The position numbers and the translations under genes were made by a program. Positions 1,619 to 63,620 of a DNA stretch of 64,000 nt are shown in pieces (position 1 is the first letter of the stretch; each line of letters opens with the position of its first letter). The notes under the pieces were generated by a model. That model did no database searches and was not told where the DNA came from. It saw only the letters and a program-made list of their open reading frames with translations. The DNA lies in NCBI GenBank assembly GCA_977017575.1, contig CDRNVI010000069.1, positions 248,001-312,000 on the forward strand. Direction: 5' to 3'. This DNA comes from Paramoeba atlantica (Eukaryota; Protista; Discosea).

Positions 1619-4204
1619 TCACTGAGTCTTACAGAAACAACAAATGATCCTAAAGAAAAAATACAGTATTCGGTGTAAAAAGGATACCCCGGGACCATTC
1701 TCATGTCCCGGATCCTCTACTTCATCCTCCGGCTCCCTGTGCGTCCTTCGCACGGGAGTGACAAACTTTTGGGGTGGGATCCTCACTTTCTCTTGTTCCT
1801 CTCTAAAGGAACTTCCAAGCAGCGTGGAGGCCGTAGCCTTCTCCCTTGGGTGTGCTCGATCCGTCCCGGGGGTATCCGGTACCGAAACGGGCATCCGCTC
1901 CGGGGAAGCGAGCAGCGAGGGTCTGGAACTCTCCGAGAATTCTCCCGCCATGTGCTCCATCGGGTTTAAATTTCCAGAGGAGGTAAGAGTGCCTGAGGCA
2001 CTCCCCGAGAGCGGGCGGCGAGCGCTGGGTGCGTGCGGGGTGGTGGGGATCAACGAGTCCATGGGAAGGAAGAAAGGGCTATCGGCGGGGGACTCGCGCG
2101 GAAGTGAAGAGCCCAGTCGCCACCGTTGTGGGGTACTCGGCGCTAGACGTTCCGGGTGGCCTGGGACCACACTTTGTGAGGAGGAGAAGAACGTCGCATC
2201 GGTGATCTGATTCTCGCGCAGGTCGAGCATTTGTATCGAACCATGGGTGATACGCTGACGCTGCTGGAAGAGCTTGCCGTCCCCCGTTAACAAGTTATCG
2301 CTGAGATCCAGGTAGTCGAGTTTCGCGGGAAGTGGTGCCATGGCCTCGACACGACCCACAAGTTCGTTGCCTCTGAGGTCAGCGTGTTGTAGACGTGAAG
2401 GCAGCACGAGCGTCTCCTGAGAACCTCTGGAAGATGCAGCCGCACCCCTACCATAATCTCTTGTTCTCTTTTCCTGGCCAGAGACTCGTAATGAGGTTTC
2501 GGGTGAACGAAGGACACTATGCGATTTGACGCTTCGTTCCGAGACTCGACTTAGTTCTCCTTCGATGGACCCACTCATAAGATTGTCGCTAAGATCCAGA
2601 TAGACCAGTGTTTGCGGAAAAGTTACTTGAGATAAGACTCCACTTAACGCATTTTCACCCAAGTCTAACTCCACCAGCCGTTGAGGAAGAGGTAAGCAGC
2701 TCAGATCACCCTCAATCTCATTCTCATGTGCCACAATTGACTGCAGGCTTTGGGGTAACAGATGCATCCGCTCTACACTACCCAGTATAGCGTTGTCACT
2801 AAGATTCACATGTTGCAGATTCGGGGGAAAGCGTAATTTCTCCACATTTCCTTGAATACGGTTATGTGCTACAACGAGTGTCGTCAAAGCACGAGGAAGC
2901 ACGAGATCGTGTAGACTGCCACTCAATCGGTTATCACGTACATCCAGTCGAGTGAGTCCCAGGGGCAGGCGCGTACGCTCGATATTTCCTGCCATCTGAT
3001 TATAACTTAAGTCCAGCTCCTCTAGGGTGTCTGGTAAAGTGAGCGAAGGGAAGACACCATGAAATTGGTTTTCACTGAGTGCCAAAGTGGAAAGTCTTGG
3101 CGGAAGCTGCACAGCTGAAAAATTGTTGCAGGAAATTGTATTCTGACTGAGATCAAGAAAGGTCAAGTGGGAAGGGAATTTTGCTTCCTCGAGTTGTCCG
3201 CTCACTTGATTATTGCTTAAATCAACTTCAGCCAGTGAGGACGGAAAGATCAAATCATGGATACGACCCCACAAAGCATTGCCTCTGAGGTCTAAAAAGC
3301 GCAACGCTGGTGTCCTGGTGATGTAAAGGAACTGTAGATCACCCTCCATACCCGTGTCACTCAGATCAAGATACGTTAAACCAGGTGGAAGACGCAAGTC
3401 TTTGACTTCGCCATGTAGTGAGTTTGCGCCCAAGTCCAGCTCTAGAAGTTCACGAGGCAGACTAAGGCTACGGACGTCAACCGAAATCATGTTATCGCTA
3501 AGGTCAAGGAGCTTCAATGACTCTGGTAGAACGATCTTCGCTAAGTCACCATACAGCTCGTTCTGGTTTAGATTTAGTACCCGAAGATGAGGGGGCAAAT
3601 TTTTGCCCGAAATGGAGGATGCCAGCGTCCCACGTAATTCGCGAGCGGACCACACAATACTAGTCACACGGCGGGAAGGGCTGCGGGATTCTCCAGAAAA
3701 GAGAGACATTAGCTTTTGTGCCCCCGAAGTGTCGGCGACTACGCTACACTCTACGCCGCTCCAATCACATGGAGGGGTTTCCGCGATCCAGCTCGGGTGT
3801 GGATTCTCTATTCCACAAATAAGACTCTGAAGTGCCTCCAAGTCCTCGCGTTCATCCGGATTCAGCGATCGAACGGGAGGTTTCGATAATTTCGTGGATA
3901 AGGCTTCTGGTATTTTACCACGTCGTCGGTGATGCGATCTCGGACTCGGGGCGTGAGAAGAAGCTCGACTCACAGCTCCCGTAGATTTCACTACAGGGTT
4001 ATCCAATCTCAGTCGCGGATTCCTTAATTGATCTTTTTGCAAATTCCGCGAACGAGTCTGTTGGGAGATGTCAGTTCCACGCATGTGTGTGGGTGCCCCG
4101 CCTAAGAAAAGACACAAGTATGGGATGATGACATGAAGAATCCTGTAGGGTACGGAATAATCGCGATAGCAGCGGGTGAATTGATTACGACAAAGGCTGC
4201 TCAT
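1619..4204 (-). CDS. Large leucine-rich repeat protein with LRRNT-like cap, Ser/Pro-rich tail and hydrophobic/Cys C-terminus
   Basis: About 20 LxxLxLxxNxLxG repeats; W..ETPPCDWSGVEC cap; ttttttacacAG acceptor upstream of the ATG. Confidence 0.9.
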   Translation of the reverse strand: MSSLCRNQFTRCYRDYSVPYRILHVIIPYLCLFLGGAPTHMRGTDISQQTRSRNLQKDQLRNPRLRLDNPVVKSTGAVSRASSHAPSPRSHHRRRGKIPEALSTKLSKPPVRSLNPDEREDLEALQSLICGIENPHPSWIAETPPCDWSGVECSVVADTSGAQKLMSLFSGESRSPSRRVTSIVWSARELRGTLASSISGKNLPPHLRVLNLNQNELYGDLAKIVLPESLKLLDLSDNMISVDVRSLSLPRELLELDLGANSLHGEVKDLRLPPGLTYLDLSDTGMEGDLQFLYITRTPALRFLDLRGNALWGRIHDLIFPSSLAEVDLSNNQVSGQLEEAKFPSHLTFLDLSQNTISCNNFSAVQLPPRLSTLALSENQFHGVFPSLTLPDTLEELDLSYNQMAGNIERTRLPLGLTRLDVRDNRLSGSLHDLVLPRALTTLVVAHNRIQGNVEKLRFPPNLQHVNLSDNAILGSVERMHLLPQSLQSIVAHENEIEGDLSCLPLPQRLVELDLGENALSGVLSQVTFPQTLVYLDLSDNLMSGSIEGELSRVSERSVKSHSVLRSPETSLRVSGQEKRTRDYGRGAAASSRGSQETLVLPSRLQHADLRGNELVGRVEAMAPLPAKLDYLDLSDNLLTGDGKLFQQRQRITHGSIQMLDLRENQITDATFFSSSQSVVPGHPERLAPSTPQRWRLGSSLPRESPADSPFFLPMDSLIPTTPHAPSARRPLSGSASGTLTSSGNLNPMEHMAGEFSESSRPSLLASPERMPVSVPDTPGTDRAHPREKATASTLLGSSFREEQEKVRIPPQKFVTPVRRTHREPEDEVEDPGHENGPGVSFLHRILYFFFRIICCFCKTQ

Positions 4205-48616: not shown

Positions 48617-49057
48617 TTTATTTAATATCTATTTATTCAACATTTATTTATTCAATATTTATTTATTTATTTATTTAAGATATAATATCTTAATAGCGTT
48701 TCAAAGTCATACGTTCGTACTTTTTATCCAACTTCTTACTATACCCCACACTTTTCCCATGCTGTTAAACAGCGGGTGGTTGATGGACCAAGCCAATTAA
48801 GCTTTACCACAATGAGACAGGTCACGGATATTTCAAGCAATGCAAAGAAAGTTCAGGCTAAAGCAGTCCACTGGGACACAGACCCGGGTAATTACCCATT
48901 TACACGGCAGGGGCATGTTATTAAGTAGGGGGGATAGTAGATGATAAAAAACATACTTTCATCCAAGACTTTTGACACGTAAAATAGCAGTTTTTCAGTT
49001 TGTGTCGTAAGTGGTGCAAAGGTCTCCCATCCATCTTACTGCAGGAACACTATTAAG

Positions 49058-49798
49058 TCAGCTTAGTATAATTTTTGTATTTCGAACATCCATATAGAGT
49101 ATATGTAAAGTCTTAGGCATAAGACTTTTCTTCACCTCACCTTGAAGATCTACATTACCGTACAGGCGTAGAGCTGACAGGCCTGGAGGTAACGAGTCTA
49201 ATTGTACCCAACCGTCGAACTGGTTTCTGTGAATAGCCAGATTCCACAGACGTGGTGGGAGACAACGTAGTTCCGGAGTTCCTGTAAAGGCATTGCAGCC
49301 CATGGCTAACGTCTCGAGCTCTGGAGGAAGATGACTTAAATCAGCGATTCCTGATAGATCATTCGTCGTTAGACATAGGTGAAGTAAAGTTTTCGGTAAA
49401 CAAGTAAAATCGATTGACCCAGTGAAAATATTATGAGCGAAGTTAGCGTCCATGGTTTGTGGCGGTAATTCATTGAGAAGTAACTCCCCAGTAAGCTGAT
49501 TGTTAGAAACAATAATTTGGAGCACTGAGCATGGGAGATATTTTAAATGGATATGGCCGTACAGTTCCATGTCAATGCCCCAGTCAAGCTTAGATGTTTT
49601 ATTTCCCTCATCACATATCACATTCTTCCACTCACATGCTGCCGTGTTGGTATTCCAAGAGGGATCGGTATTTCCGACGTCTTTGATAAAATTTGCAAGT
49701 TCGTATTCTTGTGGGACGTTGGCGCTACGAATCCGACCGCGACGTGATGATGGAATGTCCTCAGCACACAGAATGTGTAAAAAAGTCCTGTGAAACAT
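49058..49798 (-). CDS. LRR family protein (intact paralog of the interrupted gene at 61208-63143)
   Basis: Start MFHRTF at ATG 49798; RRGRIRSANVPQEYELANF. The downstream flank at ~48960-49030 is homologous to ~61060-61140. Confidence 0.9.
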   Translation of the reverse strand: MFHRTFLHILCAEDIPSSRRGRIRSANVPQEYELANFIKDVGNTDPSWNTNTAACEWKNVICDEGNKTSKLDWGIDMELYGHIHLKYLPCSVLQIIVSNNQLTGELLLNELPPQTMDANFAHNIFTGSIDFTCLPKTLLHLCLTTNDLSGIADLSHLPPELETLAMGCNAFTGTPELRCLPPRLWNLAIHRNQFDGWVQLDSLPPGLSALRLYGNVDLQGEVKKSLMPKTLHILYMDVRNTKIILS

Positions 49799-50049
49799 GG
49801 AGTGTTGTATACTTTGCAAAGAATGACTTTGAAACCATAAGGATGAATACTTTTTAAGTATGTATGTTAAGTATGTACTGTATGTAATTACCGTATGTAG
49901 TAATGTTTGCTTCAGAAAATATATGAGCCTTAGACGGTGAATATGGCTTAATAATTGGGTAAATGAGGATTTGAATTTGTGTCCTGTAATACATCCATCC
50001 AAAGAATCCTCCGAAGCTTTCTGTATTAGGGAATGTACTGCGATGTCGA

Positions 50050-59790: not shown

Positions 59791-61458
59791 CATCTGTTCT
59801 ATACATGAGTCCAAATAATTTTGACTATTTTGTGGCTGCCTTTCGTAGATATACACGAGTGCAAACAGTACACAATACAGTAGAAACGTCGTAAACAATC
59901 CGATACGTACTCTATCCAGTATACAATTATCCAGTACGTGCAGTACAACAAAGAACTGCAACAAGAAATTAGGATGCAAATCTCACTTTCGCCATTTTTA
60001 TCATTCTTGGGAAGAACGGGCTGTTGAAAACATGAAAGGTTTGGTCCTGCAGTACCACAACAAGTCAGATACTACACGACGAAGTTAGTGAAATGGCCAT
60101 CAAACTGAACAAACGGCCACTAAGGTGTTTAAAATAAGTTTCACCAAAGAGCTTGGAAGACAAAATTTTACTATAAAGAGATGCAACATAAAAGCAACGA
60201 AGTTGTAAAGCAGTAAAGGCAAAACAATTGAGTTGTAAGATTGAGTCCCAAGTTTGAATGAACACAGGAAAGACTCGATTATTATTAGGTTTCCAGCACG
60301 AGCTGAATAGTGATATTTTTCCCAACTCATGGATTCTTGCGGTGCTCCTTTTTAATAATCATTTCTTTTTAGTGAAACTCTGAAACTATCTACAAGTATT
60401 TAAAATTTTTGGTAGGTACGAGGATCTCCAATTGCTCGTCACGATTTTCTGCACTGCCTTCTAAAACTATTCTGTCTTCTTATTGCCCAGCGAACAGAAG
60501 ATGTTCGATGCGCTTCAGTCATGCAGCAGGAATCTATGCTAAATGAATGTGGAATGCACGTAGTGAATAGCTTATATTCACTCTTGTTCTCCACTCTTGT
60601 TCCACATTTAGTCGGGTCGATAATTTTCTGACGCGAAAGAATCTTTCGAAGTCATGGTCGACGTGTGGACGAAGAATTTCTTCCTAAAAAACGAAGTGTT
60701 AACGCAGAAACCTAGGAGAGCTTCATGAAACTGATTCAGATTGTGATTATCCTCTAGATCTTTAGAGATATAGTAGAGGTACCGTACAACATAAAAAGTG
60801 TTCTGGTCCGTTCCTTATTGAGCCAACAGTGATCGCCTAGTGCTCCTCCCTATCATCCGAATTCTACCAAAAACACTCATAGAATGTTAAAATTAAAGGG
60901 CATCGTGTAAAAGGGTGTCCCTAGGGACAATACTGTAACCCGGACGGTCTGAATCACGACTAGATCTAATCATGAATAGACAGAGAAAGGAGATACAGAG
61001 GACAAAAAAAATAAGATGACAAAAAATGAAGATGATATAAAAAATACCTTCGTCCTGCACTTTCATCCAACACTTTTAACTCGTACATTCAATAAGCCAA
61101 TTTTTTCAGTTTGTGCGTAAGTGGCGCAAAGGTCCCACATTAAACATATCAAACGGAGAGTACGATTAACCACTCGCATTAGGCGATCATCTCAATCATG
61201 CATGTCGTCAACTGACTATAATTTTCGTATTTCGAGTATCCACAGAAAGTATATGTAAAGTCTGAGGCATAAGACTTTTCTTCAGCTCACCTCGGAGATT
61301 TTCATTATGATCCAACATCAGACTTCGCAAACCTGAAGGTAATGTGTCCAACTGTACCCAGCCTTCAAATTGATTTTTATGAAGCATCAGATTATAGAGA
61401 GTTGGTGGGAGACCACGTAGATCCGGAGTTCCCGCAAAGGCATTGCAGCCGATGGTTA

Positions 61459-62071
61459 TGATCATACGCTCGTGGCGCAGAGATACGTCTCTCTGTGTGA
61501 CGGCCGATACCATCGGCGCATGACCCGCATACGACGGGTGTCACACAGAGAGTGGAGTGCGAGGTAGGAGACGAGACGCCCATCGGTCATGCTACAGCAC
61601 GTATAGCCATGGTTCATGCTGCAACACGGTCAAGCCGTGGGTTCATGCTGTCAGATGGTCTATCGTGGATCATGATGCATCATGGGGAGGTCCGTTACCG
61701 CCGCACTCGCTACAGCATGTAGGGAGAGAGGCGTGCAAGTTCGCATCCCCTATACACGCATACAACGTGTCCTCCCGCTGTAGCACGCCCAGTGGTCCTC
61801 AAGGGAGGCCACCATGGCGCATAGCTCCCGGGAGAAGAAAGCACGAGAAGGAGAGAGCCGGGGAGGGAAGAAAGCTCACTCGAAGAGAGCGAGCCGGGGA
61901 GGGGTGAAGAGTGCGAAGTGCGTCCCCTACTTCCGCGACAAAGAGGGACAGTTTCAGCTAGCCGTCAGCCGGAAACGGGCATTTAAAAGTAAGAATACGC
62001 CCGTTTCCGGGAAAAGAAAGGAAGGGCTAGCAAAATGTACCAACAAGGTACAGAAACTGTATCTTTATGCG
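61459..62071 (-). mobile_element. SL-RNA-headed inserted unit B (~610 bp)
   Basis: Starts CGCATAAAGATACAGTTTCTGTACCTTGTTG|GTAC (SL-like exon 62041-62071, donor GT at 62040-62039); shares a structured 5' part and a structured 3' end with unit A. Confidence 0.85.
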
Positions 62072-62135
62072 AGCGTCACGAGCTCTGGAGGAAGATGACT
62101 TAAATCAGCGATTCCCGATAGTTTATTCGCCGTTA

Positions 62136-62714
62136 TTTTTTGTTTATCATGCGCTCTTTGGCGCAGAGATAATCCCCTTAATGCGACGGCCGATGTCATC
62201 GGCACATAATCCGCCCACAACGGATGTCGCCAAAGGGGATTCGACGCGGACTCTGTCGGTAGAGAGGTCCAGACAACTCGCCTCTCTTTACGCAGCCGGA
62301 GGGGCGTACTGCAACCGACTCGGTCCCAGTCGGTAGAGGTGGTCCAGGCAACTCACCATCTCTTTACGCAGCCGGAGGGGCGCACTGCAACCGACCGCTG
62401 CCTCGCGATAATGCAAGGCAGAGTCACGCCCGGTGGTCCTCAAGGGAGGCCACCATGGCGCATAGCTCCCGGGAAGAGACAGGCGCGAGAAGAAGAAAGC
62501 CGGGGAGGGAAGAAAACTCACTCAAGGAGTGAGCCGGGGAGGGGTGAAAAGTCGGAAGTACGTCCCCTACTTCCACGACAAAGAGGGACAGTTTCCGCTA
62601 GCCGTCAGCCGGAAACGGGCATTTAAAAGGAAAATGTATGCCCGTTTCCGGGAAAAGAAAGGAAGGGCTAGCAAAATGTACCAACAAGGTACAGAAACTG
62701 TATCTTTATCGTTA
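62136..62714 (-). mobile_element. SL-RNA-headed inserted unit A (~575 bp)
   Basis: Starts TAACGATAAAGATACAGTTTCTGTACCTTGTTG|GTAC (exon-like 62682-62714); ends GATAAAC-A6 followed by a second TAACG (62131-62135). Confidence 0.85.
62545..62714 (-). ncRNA. Spliced-leader RNA-like sequence (5'-truncated exon plus intron-like stems); equivalent in unit B at ~61900-62071
   Basis: GATACAGTTTCTGTAC is identical to the kinetoplastid SL core and is followed by TTG|GT. Then come a large stem (GCTAGCC..GGCTAGC enclosing a 14-bp hairpin), single-stranded GAAACU, a GTCCC..GGGAC stem and a T-run. Confidence 0.7.
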
Positions 62715-63620
62715 CAGGTGAAGCAAAGTTTTCGGTAAACAGGTGAAATCGATTGACCCAGTGAAAATATTATGAGCGAAGTTAGCGTCCATGGTTTGTG
62801 GCGGTAATTCATTGAGAGACAACTCCCCAGTAAGCTGATTATTGGAAACAAGAATTTGGAGCACTGAGCATGGGAGATATTTCAAAACAATAATGCCGTT
62901 TAGAGCACACTTTCCCCAACGCAACTGCGACACATTATCTCCCTTGTCACATATCACATGATTCCATTCACATGCTGGCGTGTTGGTATTCCAAGAGGGA
63001 TCGGTATTGCTGACGTCTTTAATAAAGTTTGCAAGTTCGTATTCTGGTGGGACGTTGGCACCACGAATCCGACCGGGACGTGACGACGGAACGTCCTCTG
63101 CCATACGTATAATATACATGTATGAAGGAAAACTGTGATACATAGCGCAATCGGAATAATACGTTTAGGGGAACAGAGAATCAAAGAAAAACGTAAATAG
63201 ACTCATGTATTTGGTGAAATAACGTGAATGAAATTTACCATCAAAAATATTTGCAAAACGAGCTCCTCAATTCGGAAAAGAATATAGGAATTTCCTGTAC
63301 TGAGTGATATAAAATTTTCAAAAAAGAAATGTGTCTTGCGGAGCGCAATGACTCCAATGATGGAGTTTTCAGATCCCTCAACCGATACCGTTCACATGCT
63401 ATCTTTCATTTACATGATGTTGCTTTGATAATCGAATGGAGATTGAGCATCTCCAATGTACCGCATTTATGTGAGACGTTTTTACAATGAATCCGACCAG
63501 CACGTGTTGTGTTCATTTAAGCAATGCCCTCAGCTGCCCAGAAAATGAAGTATCTTACTATAGGGAACATCTAATGCTAATTCGAATAATATTATAAATT
63601 ATTATGTGACAGGGCAATGG

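Follow-up and report, generated by a model that had tools for sequence, protein, structure and literature searches.

Two leader-headed insertions in a leucine-rich repeat gene of Paramoeba atlantica and a probable hot spot for retroposon integration

An interrupted leucine-rich repeat gene and its empty counterpart

The stretch of DNA analysed here, called the window in the following, comprises 64,000 nucleotides (nt) of contig CDRNVI010000069.1 of Paramoeba atlantica. The whole window is a cluster of leucine-rich repeat (LRR) genes. On its minus strand the repeat motif has 53 matches, recurring with a period of 69 nt (23 amino acids, aa), and the proteins have about 200-350 aa with an LRRNT_2-like N-terminus. 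One of these genes, spanning 63143 to 61208 on the minus strand, is interrupted by two inserts, here called unit A and unit B. The segment 62060-62140, to which a preliminary description made from the letters alone had drawn attention, is the LRR stretch between the two inserts (Table 1). A second copy of the locus (L083) lies on contig C25. The 5' part of the gene, which is listed as an open reading frame (ORF) and has a weak Pfam match to LRRNT_2, is 99% collinear with positions 4081-5371 of L083, and the 68-nt remnant between the units matches L083 4011-4078 to 98.5% (translation ...TANKLSGIADLSHLPPELVTLA).

Table 1. Features of the interrupted LRR gene, its two inserts and a paralog in the window
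Feature	Position	Strand	Remarks
5' part of interrupted LRR gene	62713..63143	-	start codon 63143; LRRNT_2-like N-terminus and first repeats; last letters ...CAC CTG TA
Unit A, A-type leader-headed retroposon, 577 nt	62136..62712	-	head leader nt 8-38 (ACG ATAAAG...TTG); end GATAAAC + A run
Leader-derived head of unit A	62682..62714	-	compared with true leader gene; TAACG 62714-62710 = leader nt 6-10
3'-terminal hairpin of unit A	62150..62165	-	TGCGC ... GCGCA, then TGA + short tail
LRR-gene remnant between units, 68 nt	62068..62135	-	about one 69-nt repeat; starts TA ACG GCG AAT, ends ACG CTC GCA
Unit B, B-type retroposon, 614 nt	61454..62067	-	head from leader nt 11/12; 3' end GATCATAACC
3'-terminal hairpin of unit B	61465..61479	-	TGCGC ... 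GCGTA, one G-U pair
3' part of LRR gene	61208..61453	-	ATC GGC TGC AAT ... to stop codon; from ORF list; collinear with L083 up to position 4010
Uninterrupted in-window paralog	49057..49800	-	83% identity to empty-copy gene; CTA ACG at site A, ACG TTA GCC at site B

The flanks of the C25 copy are 98.9-99% identical to those in the window and both units are absent from it, so that the pre-insertion sequence can be read directly. Units A and B are recent insertions in one copy of the locus, absent from the 99%-identical other copy. The empty site A reads ...CAC CTG TAC CTA ACG GCG AAT... on the minus strand, and unit A occupies the place of the two letters CC. The empty site B, 68 nt further on, reads ...GTG ACG CTC GCA ATC GGC TGC AAT; unit B sits between GCA and ATC, with one A ambiguous. 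Compared with the empty allele, 2 nt of the target were lost at site A and 0-1 nt at site B, and neither site of the filled locus shows a target duplication. Both inserts fall at codon x4 or the first base of codon L5, in two consecutive 69-nt repeats of the form L-x-x-L-x-L-x-x-N-x-L/F-x-G. Many matches in this genome come in near-identical contig pairs (C69/C25, C15/C53, C3/C30, C51/C60 and others); apparently the assembly contains the two haplotypes or duplicates of very recent origin, and young insertions thereby have empty-site controls.

The preliminary description had taken both insertion sites to be CTAAC, an imitation of the 5' end of the spliced leader (SL). The junction letters that it quoted are all present on the minus strand: CACCTG-TAACG before unit A (62714-62710) and TAACG-GCG after it (62135-62131), GTGACGCTCGC before unit B (62080-62069) and CATAAC-CATC at its end (61460-61451). 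The paralog, too, reads as claimed at both sites. However, their interpretation stands for site A only in so far as the empty allele there has CTAACG, which are simply the Leu-Thr codons of that repeat. Site B contains no CTAAC: it had been reconstructed as ACG CTA ACC, and the empty allele has ACG CTC GCA ATC. The TAAC after unit B does not come from the target; it is the element's own 3' end, every B-type copy ending CATAACC or CATGACC whatever its flank. Likewise the TAACG in front of unit A came with the element as leader nt 6-10, as in the unrelated copies L040, L041 and L042, and its first two letters (TA), common to leader head and target, are a microhomology. We also considered TAACG...TAACG around unit A as a 5-nt target duplication and rejected it. 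It would require an additional 4-nt deletion; moreover, leader nt 6-10 heads further copies, and site B and the other LRR sites have no duplication.

The spliced leader, the unit family and its partner LINEs

The SL exon of this genome is AACTTTAACGATAAAGATACAGTTTCTGTACCTTGTTG, followed by an intron beginning GTATGAGAAGC. The text of the leader gene reads AACTTTAACGATAAAG... and starts with AACTTTAACG, not with AACTAACGCT, which had been given as the known SL start. The SL array consists of tandem 2.56-kb repeats on contigs C107 (L043, G000:C107:1-9000), C97 (L044), C11 (L046) and C74 (L045). Each repeat carries an SL RNA gene and, on the opposite strand, a 5S rRNA gene (Rfam, 99 bits); it further contains an inverted, internally deleted unit remnant, a (GA)n tract and repeats of about 20 nt resembling ATGACAGATAAGGGTGCAGT. 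An Rfam search of the window, the units and the SL array found only the 5S rRNA of the array and nothing for the unit. All 35 SL genes matched by our pattern are uninterrupted at nt 10/11 and continue with ATAAAG(A/G)TACAG after AACTTTAACG, the pattern being one that would miss an interrupted copy having G at its last position. This speaks against an element that targets SL genes.

The units are not copies of the SL gene. They have only leader nt 11-38 and a following GTA in common with the SL repeat and then read GTACATTTTGCTAGCCC..., unlike the SL intron. The sense match to the array repeat is only 31-39 nt long, the sole other similarity being the old, inverted remnant in the spacer, and no collinearity with the exon-intron-spacer repeat exists. 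The capture of excised SL circles, which had also been proposed, finds no counterpart either: the SL repeat is the 2.56-kb SL/5S unit, unlike units A and B.

The units probably constitute a non-coding retroposon family of about 570-615 nt that depends on long interspersed elements (LINEs) and comprises five subfamilies, A to E. For the census, a locus qualified if it resembled unit A or had the head sequence, irrespective of its flanks; with the array remnant set aside, this yielded 56 unique 5' junctions and 55 unique 3' junctions. The family has more than 55 copies with 86-99% identity, and their upstream flanks are mutually unrelated. Unit A is 97-98% identical to more than 20 dispersed copies, and a copy 99.3% identical to unit B lies on C74. 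None of the ORFs within the units matches a Pfam family, and they show no conservation between unit A and unit B. In being short (577-614 nt), non-coding and dispersed in many near-identical copies, the units resemble short interspersed elements (SINEs). Their head, however, is leader nt 3/6/11-38 and not an RNA polymerase III (Pol III) small-RNA gene with an internal promoter.

The 5' ends of the 56 unique copies vary. They lie at leader nt 10/11 in 32 copies, at nt 3-8 in seven and at nt 12-15 in ten, and the head is shorter in the remaining seven; one B-type copy has CTTTAACG at its 5' end, and four copies, unit A included, start with TAACG. It is because of this variation, including the ends at nt 3-8, that we assign the TAACG before unit A to leader nt 6-10 and not to the target. 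Judged from these ends, the template RNA would carry the full leader, copying usually ending near nt 11. The 3' ends are characteristic of the subfamilies: GATAAACAA with a short A/C tail in the A type, GATCATRACC at every B-type copy whatever the flank, GATATCAT in the C type, GAACATCAA(AA) in the D type and GATAAAACA in the 77%-divergent E type.

Immediately upstream of D-type units, themselves situated in LRR repeats, there are two LINEs, here called LINE-X (L075/L076) and LINE-Y (L078). At the C-terminus, the ORF of each LINE shows CCHC, RH, RPD, an acidic E, K..KY and RG in this order. The same order of motifs has been mapped in the restriction-like endonuclease (RLE) of R2 (PMC4838377). 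HMMER found 1741 relatives, one of them a Perkinsela 'polyprotein'; this match and the leader of the genome suggest a kinetoplastid-like euglenozoan. The long ones have N-terminal zinc fingers, RVT_1 and then a C-terminus of the LINE-X/Y type, with no apurinic endonuclease (APE) domain; the autonomous elements thus have a reverse transcriptase (RT) followed by CCHC and RLE motifs. A PDB sequence search with the LINE-X C-terminus gave no match. Genome-wide, 1851 first-look RT candidates were counted, many of them with open frames of 1000-2800 aa, which is a very active and diverse retroelement load for a genome of 45.7 Mb.

The last 80 nt or so of both LINEs can be aligned with the 3' ends of the units, ATCTCTG and ATGA being invariant. 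Between these two motifs a terminal 5-bp stem is paired in 10 of 10 sequences (two LINEs, types A-E, array remnant), three of its pairs with compensatory changes. Unit and partner LINE thus have a common 3' end, and on this evidence the pair would stand in the classical relation of a LINE and its short parasite. The unit is not the natural 3' untranslated region of LINE-X, as most LINE-X copies end GAATATCA(A)n without a unit. The 3' anchor of LINE-Y has a single occurrence in the genome. The tandems of LINE and unit may have arisen by template switching at the end of the unit RNA.

A hot spot at one codon of the leucine-rich repeat

The LRR family is very large: at least 3230 first-look candidates were found genome-wide, and all 150 that were scored had E < 1e-25. 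At about 0.75 kb each, the candidates would make up about 5% of the genome by our own estimate. Yet 22-23 of the approximately 55 independent unit copies (about 40%) are in LRR genes, in sense orientation throughout. With the strict motif, L5-x-x-N8-x-L/F10-x-G12 in the sense frame 0-3 nt after the junction, 19 of the 55 unique 3' junctions were recovered, and three more were recognised by eye (L053, L068, L081). For all 22 LRR junctions the distance to the L5 codon is 0-3 nt and the orientation is sense, the same position and orientation each time, as would be expected of an R2-like element. No antisense or other-phase LRR copy occurred among the unique junctions, and in one further copy, the B-type L039, the x4/L5 position was seen on the 5' side. 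Under a null of 0.053 x 0.5 x 5/69 per copy (about 0.2%), which we regard as generous and which assumes the LRR share of about 5%, the excess at this position has P ~1e-37.

The x4/L5 site is used by all five subfamilies, by the E type in 3 of 3 copies; the A type is the least specific, with 5 of 23 copies in LRR genes. At two loci (L058, L079) a tandem pair of units occupies one LRR site. The first target bases after the element are diverse in the LRR copies: TAACGG, at site A only, ATCGGC, TTGCAT, CTTCAA, TTGGGC, TTGGAC, CTCGAA, TTAAAC, ATGAAC and others. CTAAC is therefore found at the junction of site A alone, being absent from site B and the other 20-odd LRR sites. In our judgement it is probably the canonical LRR repeat, read in sense, and not CTAAC that defines the hot spot.

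Two candidates for an additional determinant were rejected. Guidance by the 3' end of the unit gave no signal, the longest word common to tail and downstream flank being 4.4 nt in hit and 4.0 nt in unhit repeats. As to extra nucleotides in the hit repeats, the only differences found amounted to a loose background motif.

The insertions differ between two 99%-identical copies of the locus, and the hot spot is therefore still active.

Interpretation and comparison with known systems

We explain these findings by LINE-dependent, leader-headed retroposons that integrate at a hot spot at x4/L5 of the LRR repeat, and give this reading a probability of roughly 0.7. It builds on what can be read directly, namely the empty sites, the element boundaries, the family census, the hot spot, the common 3' end with its hairpin and the RLE motifs. 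Which LINE gives the enzyme, how LRR DNA is recognised and why the cDNA ends at nt 11 are the points that we infer. The source RNA would begin with a spliced leader that it most likely obtained by trans-splicing. The protein of an RLE-type LINE would nick an LRR repeat in its bottom (antisense) strand, where codons x4 and L5 meet, and prime reverse transcription on the 3' end of the unit RNA through the hairpin. Copying would usually halt near leader nt 10/11 and sometimes at nt 3-8. The top (sense) strand would be cut 0-2 nt upstream, as in R2, which would account for the lack of a target duplication and for the loss of CC at site A. The 5' end could then be joined via 0-2 nt of microhomology or a few added bases, e. 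g. the ATAAAG duplications in L073 and L056.

Several observations weigh against this explanation. About 60% of the unit copies lie outside LRR genes, at sites without a shared motif, and in the youngest type (A) the share is about 80%; a strictly R2-like element would have nearly all its copies in the target. Comparison of hit and unhit repeats revealed no determinant beyond the LRR consensus. Among the loci examined, there was no master gene with an AG acceptor before GTACATTTTGC or without the leader in its DNA. One copy (L013) does have a duplication, of 11 bp. Finally, the 3' flanks of seven unique solo LINE-X copies are not recognisably LRR. The LINE adjoining the units may thus not be the source of the hot spot, or it may be the unit RNA on which the specificity depends. 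On the present data, the heterogeneity of these flanks led us to reject LINE-X as an LRR-specific or SL-specific element.

According to the preliminary description, an SL-gene-specific integrase of the CRE/SLACS/CZAR type, or the capture of SL circles, would have been misdirected to LRR codons that mimic the SL by CTAAC(G). Indeed the empty allele of site A reads CTA ACG, most units begin at leader nt 10/11, close to the classical CRE/SLACS cut, and at four junctions (L013, L058, L075/76, L078) the 3' end of another element lies exactly at nt 11-14 of a leader head. The machinery invoked is also partly there, as the LINEs with the units' 3' end are of the RLE type. On the other hand, the SL starts with AACTTTAACG, and 35 of 35 SL genes are intact. 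Furthermore, site B reads CTC GCA ATC, and no CTAAC is present at the junctions of the other LRR sites. At site A the TAACG of the target follows the insert, in contrast to the leader, which has it ahead of nt 11; the TAAC of the B type is internal to the element, and the units are not SL repeats. About 60% of the pre-insertion sites are unrelated non-LRR sequences, an outcome that the description itself had named as speaking against its idea. Mimicry of the SL as the targeting signal is refuted, and the reading built on it retains next to no probability. The other half of the proposal, that the LRR family acts as a sink for the elements, holds and is strong and register-exact.

Three further explanations were weighed. 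The units could be intron-like (introner) elements spliced out of the LRR mRNA, their phase and orientation following from splicing constraints. The LRR copies are indeed all in sense at one codon position, their removal restores the frame, and the head keeps TTG|GTA, which resembles a 5' splice site. But the ends are ATAAAG or ACG... and ...AACC or ...AAAA, not GT...AG; read against the empty allele, the borders do not appear to be those of a frame-restoring intron of the GT...AG or AT...AC kind. Splicing from the internal GTA would leave 28 nt with stop codons. Most copies lie outside genes, and insertions that are polymorphic and 97-99% identical to other copies have left selection little time; we consider introners very unlikely. 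Equally improbable is the spread of one ancestral insertion through LRR repeats and paralogs by gene conversion or unequal crossing-over. The common phase and orientation, the lack of a target duplication and the hits in adjacent repeats of one gene are in keeping with it. Yet the flanks right beside the units are wholly different between sites, without co-converted tracts, the LRR copies differ in their 5' ends (nt 3, 6, 11, 13, 15) and tails, and all five subfamilies that occupy the site also occur at non-LRR sites. Random integration, with the LRR excess due to retention in dispensable genes, is slightly less improbable but still unlikely. The members of a family with 3230 first-look candidates are probably individually dispensable; retention, however, cannot explain why 22 of 22 insertions are at one codon position and in one orientation, and polymorphic insertions of up to 99% identity are too young for much purging.

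Integration of leader-headed retroposons at the LRR hot spot can be compared with several known systems. The ingi/RIME elements of Trypanosoma brucei are APE-type, with target duplications of about 12 bp and without a leader head. In this they differ from the elements described here, which have RLE-type partner LINEs, no duplication and a leader head. The RHS (retrotransposon hot spot) family of T. brucei, into which ingi/RIME insert, is nevertheless the closest analogy, and it is an analogy only, as gene family and element class differ. RHS is described as a large multigene family of this euglenozoan with a fixed retroelement insertion site in the coding region and many disrupted members (PMC6393297, citing Bringaud et al. 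2002). In P. atlantica, too, a large multigene family is hit at one relative position of the coding region. Unlike in RHS, this site is a single codon within a repeat, and each gene has several such repeats.

With CRE1/CRE2, SLACS and CZAR of trypanosomatids and NeSL-1 of nematodes the LINEs share RT, CCHC and RLE motifs, a link to the SL and the prominence of leader nt ~11; membership of the CRE clade would be only a possibility. Those elements sit inside SL genes. Here none of the 35 SL genes has an insertion in the exon near nt 11/12, neither site A nor site B shows a downstream SL duplication at the target, the element itself includes the leader piece, and it integrates preferentially into a protein-coding repeat. 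R2 and the SIDEs resemble the units in orientation-specific, nucleotide-precise insertion with 0-2 nt of target loss, variable 5' junctions and no poly(A), in a structured 3' end common to the autonomous and the short element, and in tandem insertions at one site. R2, whose motifs and architecture have been described (PMC4838377), targets 28S rDNA and has nearly all its copies there, in contrast to an LRR codon position with about 40% of the copies. Unlike the SIDEs, the short element here is leader-headed and not an internal deletion of a LINE.

SINEs are composite: the head derives from a cellular RNA, the body is specific to the family, and the tail is common with the partner LINE (PMC7245038). 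The units have the same layout, with the difference that SINE heads derive from tRNA, 7SL, 5S or snRNA and the head here corresponds to part of the spliced-leader exon; it is no Pol III gene with an internal promoter. A literature search found no SL-headed SINE. A text search of the literature for the leader fragments likewise found no relevant paper. To our knowledge, an SL-headed SINE has not been described. In dinoflagellates, genes carry relict spliced leaders from retroposed trans-spliced mRNAs, and a genomic leader fused to many transcripts, stacked truncated relics included, is found there as here. Leader and lineage are different, and the present case is a mobile non-coding family with a target hot spot.

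The known targets of site-specific non-LTR (long terminal repeat) retroelements are rRNA, SL, snRNA and tRNA genes, microsatellites and other transposons. If the explanation given above is true, this list extends to coding repeats, and the elements would be a natural system for how an RLE-type enzyme reads a degenerate target. The coding-repeat target and the leader-derived head are the new features. More tentatively, the LINEs and their SL-headed short parasite could form an RLE retroelement lineage with codon-precise, orientation-specific integration at x4/L5 of a target family of about 3000 genes, perhaps the first site-specific non-LTR system with a protein repeat as its 'safe' target. RLE elements generally have specific targets, namely repetitive RNA genes or microsatellites (PMC4640811). 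For the organism, this means that some members of its very large LRR family are being cut short or divided, always at one point of the repeat structure, in parallel to RHS in T. brucei; if such a lineage exists, the LRR repertoire may be continually truncated and reshuffled. In addition, the analysis removes the tempting reading by SL mimicry and records the true spliced leader and the SL/5S array of this genome.

Beside the units, pieces of the leader are widespread. A 26-nt stretch of its 3' part has 634 exact matches genome-wide, and its last 14 nt have about 1000, mostly joined to sequence other than the SL intron. The dispersed leader ends often begin with CTTTAACG and follow immediately on a run of A, which makes a junction of poly(A) and leader; in some of them truncated relics are stacked, e. 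g. ...CCTTGTTG TACCTTGTTG. As far as such relics tell, retroposition of trans-spliced RNA clearly appears to be rife in the genome.

Some individual loci show more complex arrangements. At L013 (G000:C23:199176-202744, ~1508-2130) the A-type unit is flanked by the 11-bp duplication GAGAACTTTGA and went in precisely before nt 11 of a second leader-headed element (...TTG AATTATTTT). A comparable arrangement, with the 3' terminus placed precisely at nt 11-14 of the head of the next unit downstream, is seen in LINE-X, LINE-Y and a D-type unit. These abutments may reflect template switching or a second hot spot at the leader head. On C74 (L045:4256-8944), a LINE with APE and RT and an ORF of 871 aa is inserted in the spacer of the SL array. 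Its target duplication measures 22 bp, and its 5' end bears CTTGTTG, a leader relic that is truncated. An antisense, 5'-truncated B-type unit, the copy that is 99.3% identical to unit B, interrupts the RT of this LINE. On C88 (G000:C88:2379-9725, L024-L026), three unit copies without GTACATTTTGCTAG after the leader piece recur at a spacing of 3392 bp, and the unit therefore appears to be embedded in a tandemly repeated 3.4-kb segment.

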